Positions 6,846 through 13,559 of a stretch of DNA of 64,000 nucleotides are shown one piece after another. The stretch is from positions 124,001 through 188,000 of the forward strand of contig CDROCS010004055.1 in assembly GCA_977020255.1 (NCBI GenBank). The letters run 5' to 3'. The notes under the pieces were generated by a model. That model did no database searches. It was not told the origin of the DNA and worked only from the letters and a program-made list of their open reading frames with translations. The position numbers and the translations under genes are program-made. This stretch comes from Obrimoposthia wandeli. Lineage: Eukaryota. Numbering within the stretch: position 1 is the stretch's first letter; each line of letters begins with the position of its first letter.

Positions 6846-7105
6846 TGTTCTGATGTAGTAAAAATAATTTTGTAAATTTGTAGTAAATTTGTAGTTGTAA
6901 TAAAACAATTTAAATAATTAAGTTAGATAATCTGTTGTCAACATAGTTTATACGTTTTGCAAATTGACAAAGTATAAAAAGTTGTATTTGTTTGAACGTA
7001 GGCAGCAGTGATTTTGAAGATAGGAAAGTTTGAATGTTTTTGAATAAAATAGTTGAGTTATATTGAATATGACTTTTGAAATGCGAAAATCCGGCCGCCA
7101 AAACA
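6846..7105 (+). repeat. 5' LTR (TG...CA)
   Basis: Direct repeat of 13268-13525. Confidence 0.9.
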
Positions 7106-7123
7106 TGGTAGCATAGCGTGGTT
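7106..7123 (+). promoter_or_regulatory. Primer-binding site (tRNA-Met-like)
   Basis: TGGTAGCATAGCGTGGTT directly after the LTR; resembles the complement of the tRNAiMet 3' end (TGGTAGCAGAG...). Confidence 0.75.
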
Positions 7124-7160
7124 GGGCTATGGACCCCCAGTTACAAAAAAATAAATTAAG

Positions 7161-7612
7161 AAGGATACCGAGGAAGCTGACGAGGATTCGCCAAAACAGC
7201 CTGCTCCGAAGGATCCTTTCAGTTTACTTCCAAAGATAACTTTTGATATGGATGAATGGAAAAGAACATACTCGAACAATGATATTGCTACAATTGCTAT
7301 GCCATATGTCTGGGATAAATTGGATAGATAAAACTATTATATTTAGGAGTATGAATATCTCTTCCCAGAAGAGCTTAGTAACTTGTTTATGACATGTAAT
7401 CTTATCGGTGGTATGTTCCAGCGCTTGGACAGTTTACGTAAACATGCATTCGCTTCGGTGGTTGTCATTGGTAAAGATAATGCTAATACAATTAAGGGTG
7501 TGTGGGTATGGAGAGGTCAGGATCTCGCTTTCATTTTATCAGAATATTGCCAAGTGGACTACGAGTATTACAAGTGGACTAAGCTTGACTCCAACTTAGA
7601 AGAGACCAAGAA
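7161..7612 (+). pseudogene. EEF1G: Captured intronless fragment of eEF1B-gamma C-terminal domain
   Basis: KDPFSLLPKITFDMDEWKRTYSN...[25 protein letters not shown]...[12 protein letters not shown]; internal stops. Confidence 0.92.
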
Positions 7613-7848
7613 AATAAAGGTAAAGAAGCACGCAACGACAACAGAAGCTGCGTAGAGAAGTAGAGAAGGCAAAACGTGCACTGAGTGGTTCACATAGCTT
7701 CAGAATAGAGATTGAGTCGTTCTATGATGGTGACGATTTTCCTGAGACGTTAACTAGAGCACGATTTGAAGAGCTGGATATGGATCTCTTCAAGAATACA
7801 CTGAAACCGGTTCATAAGGTTTTGGAGGATTCGGAATTAAAAAAGACC
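7613..7848 (+). pseudogene. HSPA5: Captured fragment of ER Hsp70 BiP/GRP78 ATPase domain
   Basis: [15 protein letters not shown]...[48 protein letters not shown] (frame of 7651). Confidence 0.9.
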
Positions 7849-8112
7849 TTCATTGTCCAAGGATTCGGAAAGGTGAGGCTGAATACAATGCGCTATTAAC
7901 ATCGATATGGAGTGCGCTGTATCGGGGTAATCGAGTTTGATTTGGCAATCTACATCAAGGGCGGTATCGATCCAAAAGAGCTGGAGGACTTTAAGATTGC
8001 GAATGGGACCATCAATGGATACCCAAAAGCGGAGAAGAGTGACTCAGAACTGTTATACAAAGAATGTGACATCTTGATATCGGCAGCCACGGAGCGACAG
8101 ATCACGAGCACT
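7843..8112 (+). pseudogene. GLUD1: Captured fragment of glutamate dehydrogenase (NAD-binding domain)
   Basis: [11 protein letters not shown]...MRY*HRYG...GIDPKELEDFK...CDILISAATERQIT. Confidence 0.9.
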
Positions 8113-8324
8113 AAAAGTTCCCTCTATGTTGGTGAGTTTGTAGGTTGCGTGAATTGTGTTGGCAACAGTTTAGCTTTGAAATCTTTGAAATATAATGTGG
8201 GTGGGGACAACCCCAGATTTAACCCCAACAGTTTAAAACCTTTAAGAGATAATGTGGGTGGGGACAACCCCAGATCTAAACCAACATTTTTAAAAATTAT
8301 GAATTTTACAATTTCGACTCTAGA

Positions 8325-8552
8325 TTTCAAATTTTCGCAAAAACTATTGTTGGAAAGACAATAAAATTAGAACTAGAATCAGGTGAAACTATTGAAGATG
8401 TAAAGGTAAAGATTCAAGAAAAGGAAGGCATTCCGCCAGACAAACAACGGTTAATATTTGCAGGTAAGTAGCTTGAGGGTGGGCGCAATCTAGCAGATTA
8501 TGAGATACAGAGAGAAAATACCCTTCAGTTAGTACTAAGACTTAGAGGTGGG
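8325..8552 (+). pseudogene. Ubiquitin moiety, in frame with downstream gag
   Basis: [74 protein letters not shown]; same frame as ATG 8712. Confidence 0.93.
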
Positions 8553-11500
8553 ACAGTGGAAGAAGAGAAGAAGGAATGAATGCGGATAAAGAAAACAATG
8601 AAGTGGAATTTAACCAGATTAAGGAACATGGTTATAGAAGGAATAGCGATGGGAAATGTAGCGAGTTAGCGATCGAGCTATGAAGAAGAATACGAAAAAT
8701 CGGTAAGAAAGATGATGGACATGGTGGAGTGGTGTTGTAAGAACGGGCAGGAGGAGAAATCAGCGAAAACTGAGAAAGAGATAGACGAGCTAGAAAAAAA
8801 TGATGAAGAAATCAGTCAACTACTGATCAAGAAAGTATCAGAGATGAACCCAGAGGTTGGTTGGGCTGGGGATAGAAGGGTAGGATCAAAAGAGAATATC
8901 AGACTTAGAAGATTAAAAAAGTTAACTGTCCAAAAATTCAGTGGGAATTTAAGAGAATATGCAGCGTGGAAAGCAGTATTTGAGGTATACGTACACAACG
9001 CAAGTGGAGAAGCAGGCGAGAAACTCTTATATCTCCGGGATTGATTGAGAGGTAAATCGTTGAAATTAGTGGAGAGTCTGCGTTTTTCAAACGAGGCCTG
9101 TGAAGTGGCAATCGAAAAATTGGAAAGAAGATATGGAGGACAAGAAAAAAGTTATAATTTAATTATAGAAGAGATCGAAAGATTTAAACCTCTTCGACAT
9201 GGAAAGGTAAGATATTGGGAACGATTTACCGATTTTCTGGAAACCGTAATAATTAAATTGATATCAATGGGTAAAGAAGGGGAGTTACGGGATGGCAAGC
9301 TGTTCCATAGAGCTCTTAAGTTATTGCTGGAGACAGAAATTATTAGCTGGGGAAGATATTGCAAGAAAATATGTACACCTTGGATAACTGAGCTAGGGAA
9401 GAGTCAGGGTATTTGCGAAAAGCTACTGACGTATCACGGGGAGTGGACAGAAGCGGAATGGAGCGAAAGAGAGCTACTTTCCACACACAGACGATGCAAG
9501 AAAGAAGAGGGGATCAATTTTAGATATCACGAAATAACGGAGTCAATAGGGCAGAACTTCCAAATTATGGGCGAGAACCGAGAAACGAGGAAAGGAGAGC
9601 TCAAAATCAGAGAACAATGTGGAAGAAGAGTTTCTGCAAATGCGGAGAAAATCATTATTTAAGCCAATGTGAGAAGTTCAAGAGCTTGCATTTGGACGAG
9701 AGGTGGGAGTTTGTAAGAAAGAATGTGCTCTGTTTTAATTGTCTTAATGAAGGCCATTGGCGAATGAATGCAAGTTAAGGAAGTTCTGTAATGTGACTGG
9801 ATGTCCAACAAAGCACCACTTCTTGGTGCATCGAAAATGTAAGGGGAGCACTATGTCATCGGTGAAATTCACAAACCACATTAAGATAGGTGGTAAGAAC
9901 AAAGTAATTACATTGAGGACCGTGCCAGTCGTCCTCAGAAATGAGAAAAGAACAGTGCAGGTAAATGCGCTATTAGATGATGGTAGCACCACCAGCTACG
10001 TCAACAGTTAAGTGGCGAAGACATTGAAGGCAGAAGGTACAAGGCAGACAGTACCAGTCAGTGTTATCGGAGGTAGATTACACGAAATAGCCACAACCTC
10101 GGTGACATTAACAGTGAAAGGGGTAGATAGTTGAGAAAGAATGCAACTAGATGCACTCACAGTAAATAACGTGACCGGCTACTTGAAAGTTTATGAGTGA
10201 GGAGATGTGGTACAAAGGTGGACACATCTCAGGAAGATAAAATGACCTCAGGGAGATAGAAGAATGCGGAAGGTGTATGTACTTATAGAAACCGATTGTA
10301 TGCGGGCACATCGAGTATTGAGAAAGATTGCTGGGCGAGAGGAAAGCCAGTGACAGGATTGACTCCACTCAGGTGGACATGTGTAGGGAAGGTCAATGTA
10401 GACCAGCGGCAACAGGTTAATTTCATAAGGACGTATTTTACAGGTAATGAGCAACTAGATCAGACACTTCAATGTTTTGGGAAAGTAGAGGAAGAACTGA
10501 TGAAATCTAAGATATCGACTGAAGACAATAAATTATTGCAGATGACAAAAGAAAATATGAGGTACGATGGCGAGAGGTATCAGGTAAAATTACCTTGGAA
10601 GATAGAAAAAGAGAAATTACAGAAGAGTCAGGAAATGGCGAAAAGAAGATTGGATAATTTGACACAACGTTTTAAACGGAATAATCAGCTAGAAGAAGCA
10701 TACACCCGAGTAATAAAAGACAACTTACAGAAGGGTATATTAGAGTAGTAGAAGAAAAAAATGAAGTGGGAACTAAGAGGTTGTTATCGCACTTCCCAGT
10801 AGTACGTAATGATAAAATTACCTCAAAAGTGAGAATTGTATTTGACACAGCAGCAAAAGTGAACGGAATCAGTTTGAATGAAGCTTTAGTATGTGGCCTA
10901 AAATTCCAGGGTGACTTGATAACAATACTAACAAGATTCCGACGGCACCCAGTAGCATTGATATGCGACATTCAGAGAATGAACCTACAGATACAGGTTG
11001 CAAAAGAAGATCAACCGTATCTTAGATTTTTATGGTGGATATATGGTAAGGTGCGGCAACTAGAGTTCAACTGATTGGTATTTGGTTTAAATACATATCC
11101 GTTTCTGGCATAGTTGATCACACAAGAGAATGCTAGAAGCTACCTAGGGAAGTATCCGAGAGCTGTTGAAACAATATTATATTCTACTTATATGGATGAT
11201 AGTATTGATTCAGTCACCACACTCGAACAAGGTTTAAAATTGAAGTATGAGTTAAAAGAAGTGTGGACTGCAGCAGGGATGAAAGCACGAAAGTGGTTAA
11301 GCAACAGCGAAGAATTGATGAAGACTGTACCTGAAGATGAGCGAGCTACCAAATGGAAGACAGAAGAAGAAGAAGAAGAAGAAGAAGAAGAAGAAGAAGA
11401 AGAAGAAGAAGAAGAAGAAAATGAAGTAACAACGAAGACATAATGAGTGAAATGGGATCCACGAGATGATCTGTTTAAATTTAATATCACCGAGATAAAT

Positions 11501-13195
11501 TTAGAGCGAATAACGAAAAGAACATTTCTCAGTCTCATAGCACGAATATATGACCCGTTAGGAATGGTGAGTGCATTTACTATAAAGGGAAAGATGATTA
11601 TGTAAGATATATGGTTAAGTGCTGCAGATTGAGACGATGAATTGGATGAAAAATTAACAACTACCATAAGGAAATGGAGCGACGATTGTTTATACTTAGA
11701 CAGAATACGAATGAATCGATGTTTAAAAATATTCGAGAAATCAGTGATAGATTACCACATTTTTGTAGATGCGTCAATGAAAGCTTATGGAGCAGTGATG
11801 TATGCTTGTAAACTGGTAGAGGAAGTGCGCAGTACATTAGTAATAGCGTAAGCAAAGATTGTCCCAATATCTACAATATGTCTACCAAGGTTAGAGTTAA
11901 TGGCAGCTTGTGTAGGATTAACCATTGGAAGAAAAGTGGCGGAAGCGTTAGAAATCGAAATGAAACAAATAACATTCTGGAGTGATAGCATGACCACGTT
12001 GAGCTGGATAAAACAACACACTCGTTTGTTCAAAACATTTGTAGTAAATAGAGTATCAAATATTCAGAGGCAAACAAAACCTAATCAATGGCGGTATGTT
12101 TTTACCAAAGAAAATCCAGCAGATTTTCTATCCCGAGGCATAAATTTAGAAGAATTGGTAAAGTCGAGAATGTGGTGGGAAGGTCCAGAATTTTTAAAGC
12201 AGGAGCAAAATGACCAAAATAAGAAAATAAATGCGCAAGAATCAAAAACTGAACGACAGAAGGAGCCTTGTGTTTTAACAAAACCACAAAAGTCAGAACC
12301 TATGTGGGACAAACAGACGTATTTAGGACAGAGACTTTTTCAGATTGGAGAAGACTGATTACAGTACGAACTTGGATAAATAGATTCGTAAAAAACTGTC
12401 GAGTTCCAAAATTAGAACGACAGGTGGAAACATTATCGATAGAGGAATTAGAAGATGCAAGATGTACTTTAATAAGAGAAGATCAAAAATTAAATTATCC
12501 ATATGAATTAAAAGCATTGGATGAAGGAAAATCGATTCCACAGAAGAGTATAATTTCCAGCCTAAATTCAATATTAGATGAATTAGTGATAAGAAGTAAT
12601 AGCCGAGTTATTACCATCAAGCACGAGATTTCCTATCATTTTAGCACAACATAGTTGGGTCACGTGGCTGATAATAAGAGATTATCATAAGAAACGAAAA
12701 CATATAGCTGGTGTAAATAATTTATTTAGTGAACTAATCAGAAAATTTTGGGTAGAAAAAGCAAGAGTGGTCGTACAAGAGTATCAAAGAAAATATTTAG
12801 AGTGTAAACGTCGTGCGAGAAAAGGAGTTATAGTGAAAATAGCCCCCTTACCACGAATGACATTTCTAAGTCCATTACGAGCTTTTGATAAAGTGGGGGT
12901 TGACTTCGTATCTAACAATGCAAGGCCGTGGCAAAATTCGACAGAAACGGTACCTTTGTTTGTTCCCGTACCTACAAACTCGATCAGTGCACCTCAAATT
13001 AGCATGGGGTTTGGATACAGATGCGTTTCTACGAGCATTCAAAAGAATAAAGAGTTTAAGACGAGACAAAGCAGGAGAGACACGAAGCTGTATAGTAGTG
13101 TTAGGTGGAAAGGAATTTGTACGGCCGGTAGCGAGGTTGTATCCACTAGAGGTAGAAGGAAGAGAAGAATGAAGATGCAGGAAACAAAGGTTTAA
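8553..13195 (+). pseudogene. BEL/Pao gag-pol, many stops and frameshifts
   Basis: Gag KFSGNLREYAAW; Zn knuckles; protease ALLDDGS; RT YMDD (~11190); RNase H FVDASMKAYGAV; integrase C-terminus RPVARLYPLE. Confidence 0.92.
11363..11419 (+). repeat. (GAA)19 microsatellite (poly-Glu) in RT/RNase H linker
   Basis: Direct count. Confidence 0.95.
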
Positions 13196-13267
13196 AATGG
13201 CAGTTGTTAGGTCATCCTTTGTAGGGTTGACAAACCAGGAGATCGGGTTTGGTCAAGGCGAGGGGTG

Positions 13268-13525
13268 TGTTCTGACGTAGTAAAAATAATTTTGTAAATT
13301 TGTAGTAAATTTGTTGTTGTAATAAAATAATTTAAATAAGTAAGTTAGATAATCTGTTGTCAACATAGTTTATGCGTTTTGCAAATTGACAAAGTATAAA
13401 AAGTTGTATTTGTTTGAATATTGCTACGTAGGCATCGGTGATTTTGAAGATAGGGGAGTTTCAATAAAATAGTTGGATTATGTTGAATATGACTTTTGAA
13501 ATGCGAAAATCCGGCCCACCAAATA
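13268..13525 (+). repeat. 3' LTR, preceded by polypurine tract AAGGCGAGGGG
   Basis: Direct repeat of the 5' LTR with several substitutions and indels. Confidence 0.88.
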
Positions 13526-13559
13526 TATTTTATTCATATCTTTATACACATTTCGTATT

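Follow-up and report, generated by a model that had tools for sequence, protein, structure and literature searches.

Host coding fragments upstream of a ubiquitin-Gag fusion in a BEL/Pao retrotransposon of Obrimoposthia wandeli

How does an LTR retrotransposon come to hold pieces of several host genes between its primer-binding site (PBS) and gag, and how might it go on moving with them in place? The question is raised by an element in a stretch of 64,000 nucleotides of Obrimoposthia wandeli DNA (here called the window), in which an earlier note had described sense-strand fragments of elongation factor 1-gamma (EF1G), BiP, glutamate dehydrogenase (GDH) and ubiquitin between the PBS and gag. 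We found all four, with coordinates that were right to a few bases, and followed the fragments to their host genes, to the sibling copies of the element and to relatives beyond this genome.

The element and its host-derived fragments

The element in the window is a BEL/Pao LTR retrotransposon, identified as such by its LTR pair, the adjoining PBS, a Gag with DUF1759 and an A17 peptidase (Table 1). The two LTRs share 94.0% identity (15 mismatches over 251 aligned bases, and a few indels), and the PBS, which we take to resemble the complement of the 3′ end of initiator tRNA-Met, is kept in all sibling copies, in a related family on contigs C2209 and C556, and on metagenome contig L080. DUF1759 (PF03564) matches the Gag of this decayed copy at E=2.3e-5, just below the curated cut-off, and matches its relatives much more strongly; the peptidase matches Peptidase_A17 (PF05380) at E=3.5e-7. 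No Pfam match to reverse transcriptase (RT) or integrase was found on the fragmented pol ORFs of the window copy, where pol is decayed, and there is neither a clear target-site duplication at this copy nor a tRNA gene found in the window. A run of about 20 Glu codons, a GAA/GAG repeat, occupies positions 11350-11420 within the decayed pol. The window copy is an old, dead insertion whose stops and frameshifts are private: in-frame stops interrupt EF1G (7329 and 7344), GDH (7897) and ubiquitin (8469), alignment of the BiP piece with host BiP shows a gap of 10 nt near 7640, and immediately past the GG of ubiquitin the frame is broken, with a stop at 8577.

Table 1. Features of the BEL/Pao element in the window (positions within the 64,000-nucleotide stretch)
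Feature	Position	Strand	Basis and remarks
5′ LTR	6846..7106	+	TG...CA ends; direct repeat with 13268-13527
PBS, sequence TGGTAGCATAGCGTGGTTGGG	7107..7127	+	directly 3′ of the LTR
PBS-adjacent ATG and short conserved element-own segment	7129..7157	+	comparison of 18 copies; precedes every cargo variant
EF1-gamma C-terminal domain fragment (cargo 1, youngest by structure)	7158..7612	+	PF00647, PDB 1pbu, host gene
BiP nucleotide-binding-domain fragment (cargo 2)	7608..7847	+	PDB BiP chains, host gene
GDH fragment (cargo 3, three host exons)	7843..8114	+	PDB GLUD2, host exons
Spacer with 57-bp tandem duplication (8175-8231, 8232-8288)	8115..8327	+	one frame with GDH and ubiquitin in sibling copies
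Ubiquitin, residues 2-76 (Met1 lacking), C-terminus LRLRGG, joined directly to Gag	8328..8552	+	PF00240
gag, starts TVEEE... directly after GG; DUF1759 at 9045-9662	8553..9800	+	3′ end (~9800) approximate; frameshifted in the window copy
Decayed pol region; Pao peptidase A17 at 11642-11851	9801..13250	+	Pfam
3′ LTR, purine-rich tract just before	13268..13527	+	direct repeat

A comparison with host genes, proposed in the earlier note, located the sources of EF1G, BiP and GDH in this same genome. The EF1G piece (Pfam PF00647, E=1e-10 and 3e-22; PDB 1pbu, E=3e-33) is 93.0% identical at the nucleotide level to the host gene (L021) on C4623, whose 315-aa last exon holds the entire captured piece. 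The second fragment matches PDB chains of BiP at E=1.3e-30, against about 1e-17 for cytosolic HSP70s, and is 91.2% identical in nucleotides to a long exon of host BiP (L078, C3923). The GDH piece is of animal type (PDB GLUD2, E=1.3e-18) and 90.2% and 93.1% identical to two host exons (L076 and L077); the host gene, which is split into exons, lies on C1485 with a second copy on C3178. Measured on small pieces of the host genes, nucleotide identity is 90-96% for EF1G, BiP and GDH. The ubiquitin module (PF00240, E=2.2e-13) is about 72-75% identical to host ubiquitin, with synonymous sites saturated. Judged by this divergence, the captures of EF1G, BiP and GDH appear to be recent and that of ubiquitin ancient.

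The genome assembly (1.35 Gb) is that of a holobiont and holds many bacterial contigs beside those of the animal. Among loci L031-L062 are intact bacterial DnaK and GdhA genes from several lineages, and some of the matches contain many in-frame TGA codons, which suggests a genome using genetic code 4. A first search of the assembly for ubiquitin gave more than 5000 candidates. Tandem ubiquitin-like arrays with a period of about 270 bp and separate frames of 82-90 aa occur at C2592:108492-110327, C2050:143565-144848, C1456:374610-376436, C4682:39914-41725 and C1351:88680-89429; they differ from the canonical 228-bp polyubiquitin genes on C2160, C2465, C83 and C1890.

Spliced origin, junctions and sibling copies

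The GDH fragment is the informative one with respect to splicing. It consists of about 16 nt of an upstream host exon followed by exon A and then exon B, with exon-exon joints at about 7860|7861 and 7998|7999, and its 3′ end falls inside exon B. In the host gene an intron ending in CACCAG stands directly before the GGATTC of exon A, exon A gives way to GTAAGT, and an intron of 5.3 kb separates the two exons (C1485). Because the fragment spans two host introns, it must have been copied from spliced mRNA. The EF1G and BiP pieces each lie within one host exon and are uninformative on this point; a second cargo type, about 1.3 kb of a gene on C1043 carried by L023 and L030, likewise lacks that gene's 75-nt intron (seen in L030).

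LTR elements, including Pao/BEL elements, capture host mRNA by microsimilarity-dependent template switching (Tan et al. 2016, Genome Res, PMC5131818). At the locus studied here BiP and GDH are joined in frame at a shared AAGAC (7843-7847), and the EF1G|BiP junction falls within a lysine-run microhomology, AAGAA..AAGGTA, where it is out of frame in the window copy and in frame in siblings L004, L002 and L007. The fragments thus lack introns, the BiP-GDH joint runs in frame through a shared lysine codon and the EF1G-BiP joint sits, out of frame, on a microhomology, all as first described; the serial capture of mRNAs that was proposed on those grounds is supported by the spliced GDH piece, the sense orientation of every piece, the microhomologies and the nested variants described below.

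Searching the genome with window positions 7100-8600 gave 70 matches. The same mosaic stands on other contigs at about 90% identity (L002, L003, L004 and L009), and with internal deletions in L012, L018 and L028. At least five mosaic copies carry a full LTR at independent loci (L001, L002, L003, L009 and L012 among those tested), and since their flanks are unrelated, the mosaic must have transposed as a unit. The earlier note had made the existence of siblings a check on its reading, and the mosaic proved to be a trait of a family rather than of the window copy. A further set of matches (type B: L005-L008, L010 and L013) was considered as a subfamily and rejected, as their flanks align at 94-98%: they represent one 5′-truncated copy that lacks the LTR and most of the PBS and has lost internal parts of EF1G. 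The segment that holds it, at least 4 kb long, has undergone segmental duplication at least six times, at 94-98% identity.

The earlier note had also held that a mosaic unsupported by spanning reads would count against it. Read-derived contigs cover the region, and one of them (X3 record 18) bridges the BiP|GDH junction; they come from four runs of one sample that is probably the source of the assembly, no RNA run being found, and at 50-200 nt are too short to cover more than one junction each. That the mosaic arose as an assembly artefact, or by DNA-level rearrangement of genomic gene copies, strikes us as very improbable: a holobiont assembly with many bacterial contigs and homopolymer lengths that differ between copies might invite such an explanation, but the same mosaic on many contigs with unrelated flanks, the absence of introns and the contig across BiP|GDH all speak against it.

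Beyond the mosaic itself, variant copies have the 3′ end of GDH, the spacer, ubiquitin and gag in common and differ on the 5′ side; sibling subfamilies have swapped this side of the cargo for other host coding fragments. L014-L017 and L020 hold a much longer BiP piece (about 120-325 of the HSP70 profile) with an identical BiP|GDH junction, which implies that EF1G was captured later and truncated BiP. A copy on C2224, in which a longer GDH piece (profile 1-139) adjoins the spacer, fits the state preceding the BiP capture. Read as a nested series, these variants put the captures in the order GDH, then BiP, then EF1G. A fragment of an acidic protein that we could not name is found in L011 and L020, joined to EF1G in one copy and to the long BiP in the other. 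The cargo of L024-L027 was related by a language-model protein atlas to the HEAT region of an N-terminal kinase-like protein, which we take as a lead only; the atlas gave nothing for another piece, and searches of Pfam and PDB left most of the remaining cargo without a name. The history of capture is nested and partly reticulate, as frequent template switching predicts.

Reading frame and the ubiquitin-Gag fusion

All identified cargo pieces are sense coding sequence, with no UTR or antisense piece among them. Several siblings are open across the joints: L004 has one frame of 344 aa through EF1G, BiP, GDH and spacer; L002 is open for 232 aa through GDH, spacer, ubiquitin and gag; L003 for 306 aa through spacer, ubiquitin and gag; and L024 for 246 aa through its own cargo, the end of GDH, spacer and ubiquitin. 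Ubiquitin is in frame with Gag in L002, L003, L017, L023, L024 and L027. At least eight distinct junctions are in frame, against a chance of 1/3 for each (about 0.003 for 8 of 10, by a rough estimate), and one or two (L015, L024) are out of frame, each observed in a single copy. No stop is common to most copies, and none of the copies in the window's own family is free of both stops and frameshifts. The most extensive frame is found in the related family, represented by two copies over their first 1.6-3.2 kb (C2209 and C556), whose LTRs are unrelated to those of the window's element and whose ubiquitin-gag is 71% identical to it. In C2209 a frame of 1108 aa starts at the ATG beside the PBS, crosses Cys-rich cargo and spacer (about 330 aa together) and continues into ubiquitin and gag; it ends after those 1108 aa, so that this copy, too, is not fully open through pol.

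Where translation would begin is less uniform. L020 and C2209 have the PBS-adjacent ATG in the same frame as the cargo, and most other copies, C556 included, do not; in the window copy the frame of the ATG at 7129 differs from that of EF1G, and in most copies the out-of-frame ATG opens a frame of only 9 codons. The suggestion that the region was once a single ORF from the ATG at 7129 is thus sustained by siblings open across the junctions and by the 1108-aa frame, but not by the position of the ATG, which is off the cargo frame in most copies. Just 3′ of the start codon the lengths of a C run and an A run differ between copies and toggle the match between ATG and cargo frames (L082 292-360, from C556; L079 1641-1700, from C2209; window 7129-7160), and the A run of C556 reads A AAA AAG, a phase typical of slippery sites. 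These differences may be real, may be assembly errors or may reflect programmed or transcriptional slippage.

The ubiquitin module bears the marks of an old component. Nearly all copies and lineages read lack Met1, and most keep the terminal GG, as a rule with Arg before it. Between the window's family and the C2209 family the dN/dS of ubiquitin is 0.19 at a dS of about 1. Ubiquitin is probably an old module, under purifying selection and common to a wider clade. The earlier note had counted it as one of four serial captures; it does appear to be a captured module, but an ancient and selected one rather than a recent acquisition. A calculation of dN/dS for each fragment, also proposed there, was informative for ubiquitin and not for the three recent fragments: EF1G, BiP and GDH have only 5-18 shared substitutions per fragment relative to the host, confounded by changes on the host branch, and for EF1G 11 of the 18 shared changes are non-synonymous. 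These captures are too young for their open frames to prove selection.

The same observations bear on an explanation that we consider unlikely, in which the fragments and ubiquitin are untranslated passengers in a 5′ leader, translation of Gag begins at a Met of its own within a few codons of the GG, and the shared frame is coincidental or inherited from one event. Met codons do lie in Gag 6-10 residues past the GG, where Gag could in principle start, the PBS-adjacent ATG is off the cargo frame in most copies, and stops are present in all copies of the window's family. Set against this are the number of different junctions that are in frame, the C2209 frame that passes from ATG through cargo and ubiquitin to gag, the constraint on ubiquitin together with its kept GG and lost Met1, and the lack of UTR and antisense sequence among the identifiable pieces. 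The stretch from PBS to Gag is probably coding, and where the earlier note had called it a leader, we find that it behaves as the 5′ part of the gag ORF rather than as an untranslated region.

Ubiquitin fusions are cut with any next residue but Pro, and Thr, Ser and Gly are stabilising N-termini. In the copies and lineages read, the residue after the GG is never Pro: it is T in the window's and C2209 families and T, S, G or M in relatives. With its fold, its C-terminal RGG and a non-Pro next residue, ubiquitin-Gag has the sequence features of a deubiquitinase substrate, and cleavage itself is predicted from them. An exhaustive HMMER search with the Gag part alone returned 568 relatives, the best of which are ubiquitin plus DUF1759 fusions on metagenome contigs, and a word-based protein search with the N-terminus of the C2209-family Gag gave no match. 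One of these relatives, P0002, carries an HSP90 fragment 5′ of its ubiquitin. The HSP90 fragment, ubiquitin and a BEL/Pao Gag share one frame of 525 aa on a metagenome contig from a more GC-rich organism (L080; ENA ERZ27314303 k141_4160739, 280-1857), and this frame also runs through a PBS of the same type (TGGTAGCAGAGC...).

Two further explanations can be weighed, and we think each of them improbable. In one, the copies are dead-on-arrival chimeric retrocopies of the type described by Tan et al. 2016, defective and non-autonomous, mobilised in trans by intact relatives, and neither cargo nor ubiquitin has a role. The mechanism and multi-gene chimeras are documented, including for Pao/BEL (PMC5131818), and the pol of the window copy is decayed, but the retrocopies described in that study replace part of the internal ORFs, whereas here gag-pol is kept and the variation, which recurs and stays in frame, is confined to the region upstream of ubiquitin; ubiquitin itself is conserved across families and in other datasets. 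In the other, the cargo is useful to the element, either as a hostage against small-RNA silencing or as chaperone pieces that aid translation or assembly. Chaperone or housekeeping pieces do recur in two datasets (BiP here, HSP90 in P0002) and are kept through bursts of transposition; however, the cargo is often replaced and is heterogeneous, including proteins without a recognisable domain, the excess of non-synonymous changes in EF1G indicates that its protein sequence is not conserved, and abundant mRNAs are the likeliest to be co-packaged in any case.

The spacer between cargo and ubiquitin is itself conserved. It holds 57-bp tandem units, one to three per copy, each holding a motif of about 44 nt (window 8185-8228 and 8242-8285; L075 ~709-752; L082 ~1057-1100). 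This motif, with the core AATGTGGGTGGGGACAACCCCAGAT, is 93% identical to its counterpart in the C2209 family, compared with 71% for the adjacent ubiquitin-gag coding sequence, and its 3′ part (AACCCCAAC) is complementary to the 3′ part of the PBS. A local RNA hairpin in the motif was considered and rejected, as folding was no better than that of shuffled sequences (z -0.6 to -0.8), which gives no support to a structural role.

A proposed mechanism and its relation to known systems

The explanation that we favor, and hold to be reasonably though not overwhelmingly probable, is that host pieces entered a translated N-terminal region one after another by template switching, and that the element tolerates them because ubiquitin serves as a linker cleaved by the host. 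We envision an element ordered as a start segment of its own, a hypervariable cargo region, a conserved spacer and ubiquitin fused to Gag. Late in minus-strand synthesis, which copies the region from PBS to Gag last, RT would switch onto a co-packaged host mRNA and back, once for each fragment. Only switches that leave the frame open would survive, and the cargo pieces would be coding, sense and in frame because translation must cross them to reach Gag. Ubiquitin would have been captured long ago and kept by selection as a built-in cleavage site, at which host deubiquitinases would cut after ...RGG and free a Gag with Thr, Ser or Gly at its N-terminus, whatever lies upstream. If Gag is released in this way, the upstream region becomes free to take cargo.

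A broader version of this model, which we regard as possible but rather less than probable, is that a BEL/Pao clade in this animal and in the organisms behind the metagenome contigs has domesticated host ubiquitin as an N-terminal cleavage site for Gag. The stretch from PBS to ubiquitin would then be a translated but expendable sandbox in which in-frame host exons are shuffled, and homopolymer slippage may govern entry into the cargo frame.

Parts of this arrangement have counterparts elsewhere. Retroviral oncogene transduction yields Gag-onc fusion proteins in which, as here, a retroelement carries host coding sequence from spliced mRNA joined in frame to Gag. In those fusions viral genes are lost and the product is not cleaved, whereas in the present element the host pieces precede Gag and are set apart from it by a ubiquitin through which Gag could be released. 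The polyproteins of cytopathogenic pestiviruses (BVDV) with host ubiquitin inserts and the natural ubiquitin-ribosomal protein fusion genes provide a second parallel, in that a ubiquitin ending in GG stands directly upstream of a protein that needs a free N-terminus, and host ubiquitin C-terminal hydrolases make the cut. Those cases concern an RNA virus and cellular genes; here the carrier is an LTR retrotransposon, with cleavage predicted from its sequence.

The closest precedents for the capture itself are the chimeras described in PMC5131818, which resemble the present element in having partial, intron-less copies of host mRNA between LTRs, microhomology at the switch points, Pao/BEL carriers and secondary rounds of transposition. 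Those retrocopies are single events that take the place of part of the element's ORFs; here a single slot upstream of ubiquitin-Gag holds many variants, gag-pol is kept and a single frame is maintained. Pack-MULEs and Helitrons similarly collect several unrelated host gene fragments in one element, but they take genomic DNA with its introns, in either orientation and with no requirement for frame (PMC6431247), whereas the pieces studied here are spliced, sense and in frame. A full-text literature search found no published case of ubiquitin in the Gag of an LTR retrotransposon, nor of a ubiquitin-Gag clade with an in-frame cargo slot. The mechanism of capture was already known, and a ubiquitin-Gag clade with an in-frame cargo slot is new as far as that search goes.

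The capture of host mRNA is usually a dead end that destroys an LTR element. A ubiquitin placed before Gag may explain how captured pieces were accepted repeatedly at a fixed slot while the element continued to move, and the model provides a testable rule for why these pieces are coding, sense and in frame. We know of no retrotransposon that outsources a step of Gag processing to the host ubiquitin system; if the ubiquitin is indeed cut by the host, this would be the first such retrotransposon known to us, and a natural counterpart of the ubiquitin-fusion technique used in the laboratory. It would also go on supplying in-frame chimeras of several genes (EF1G-BiP-GDH, HSP90 and others) that could seed new ones.
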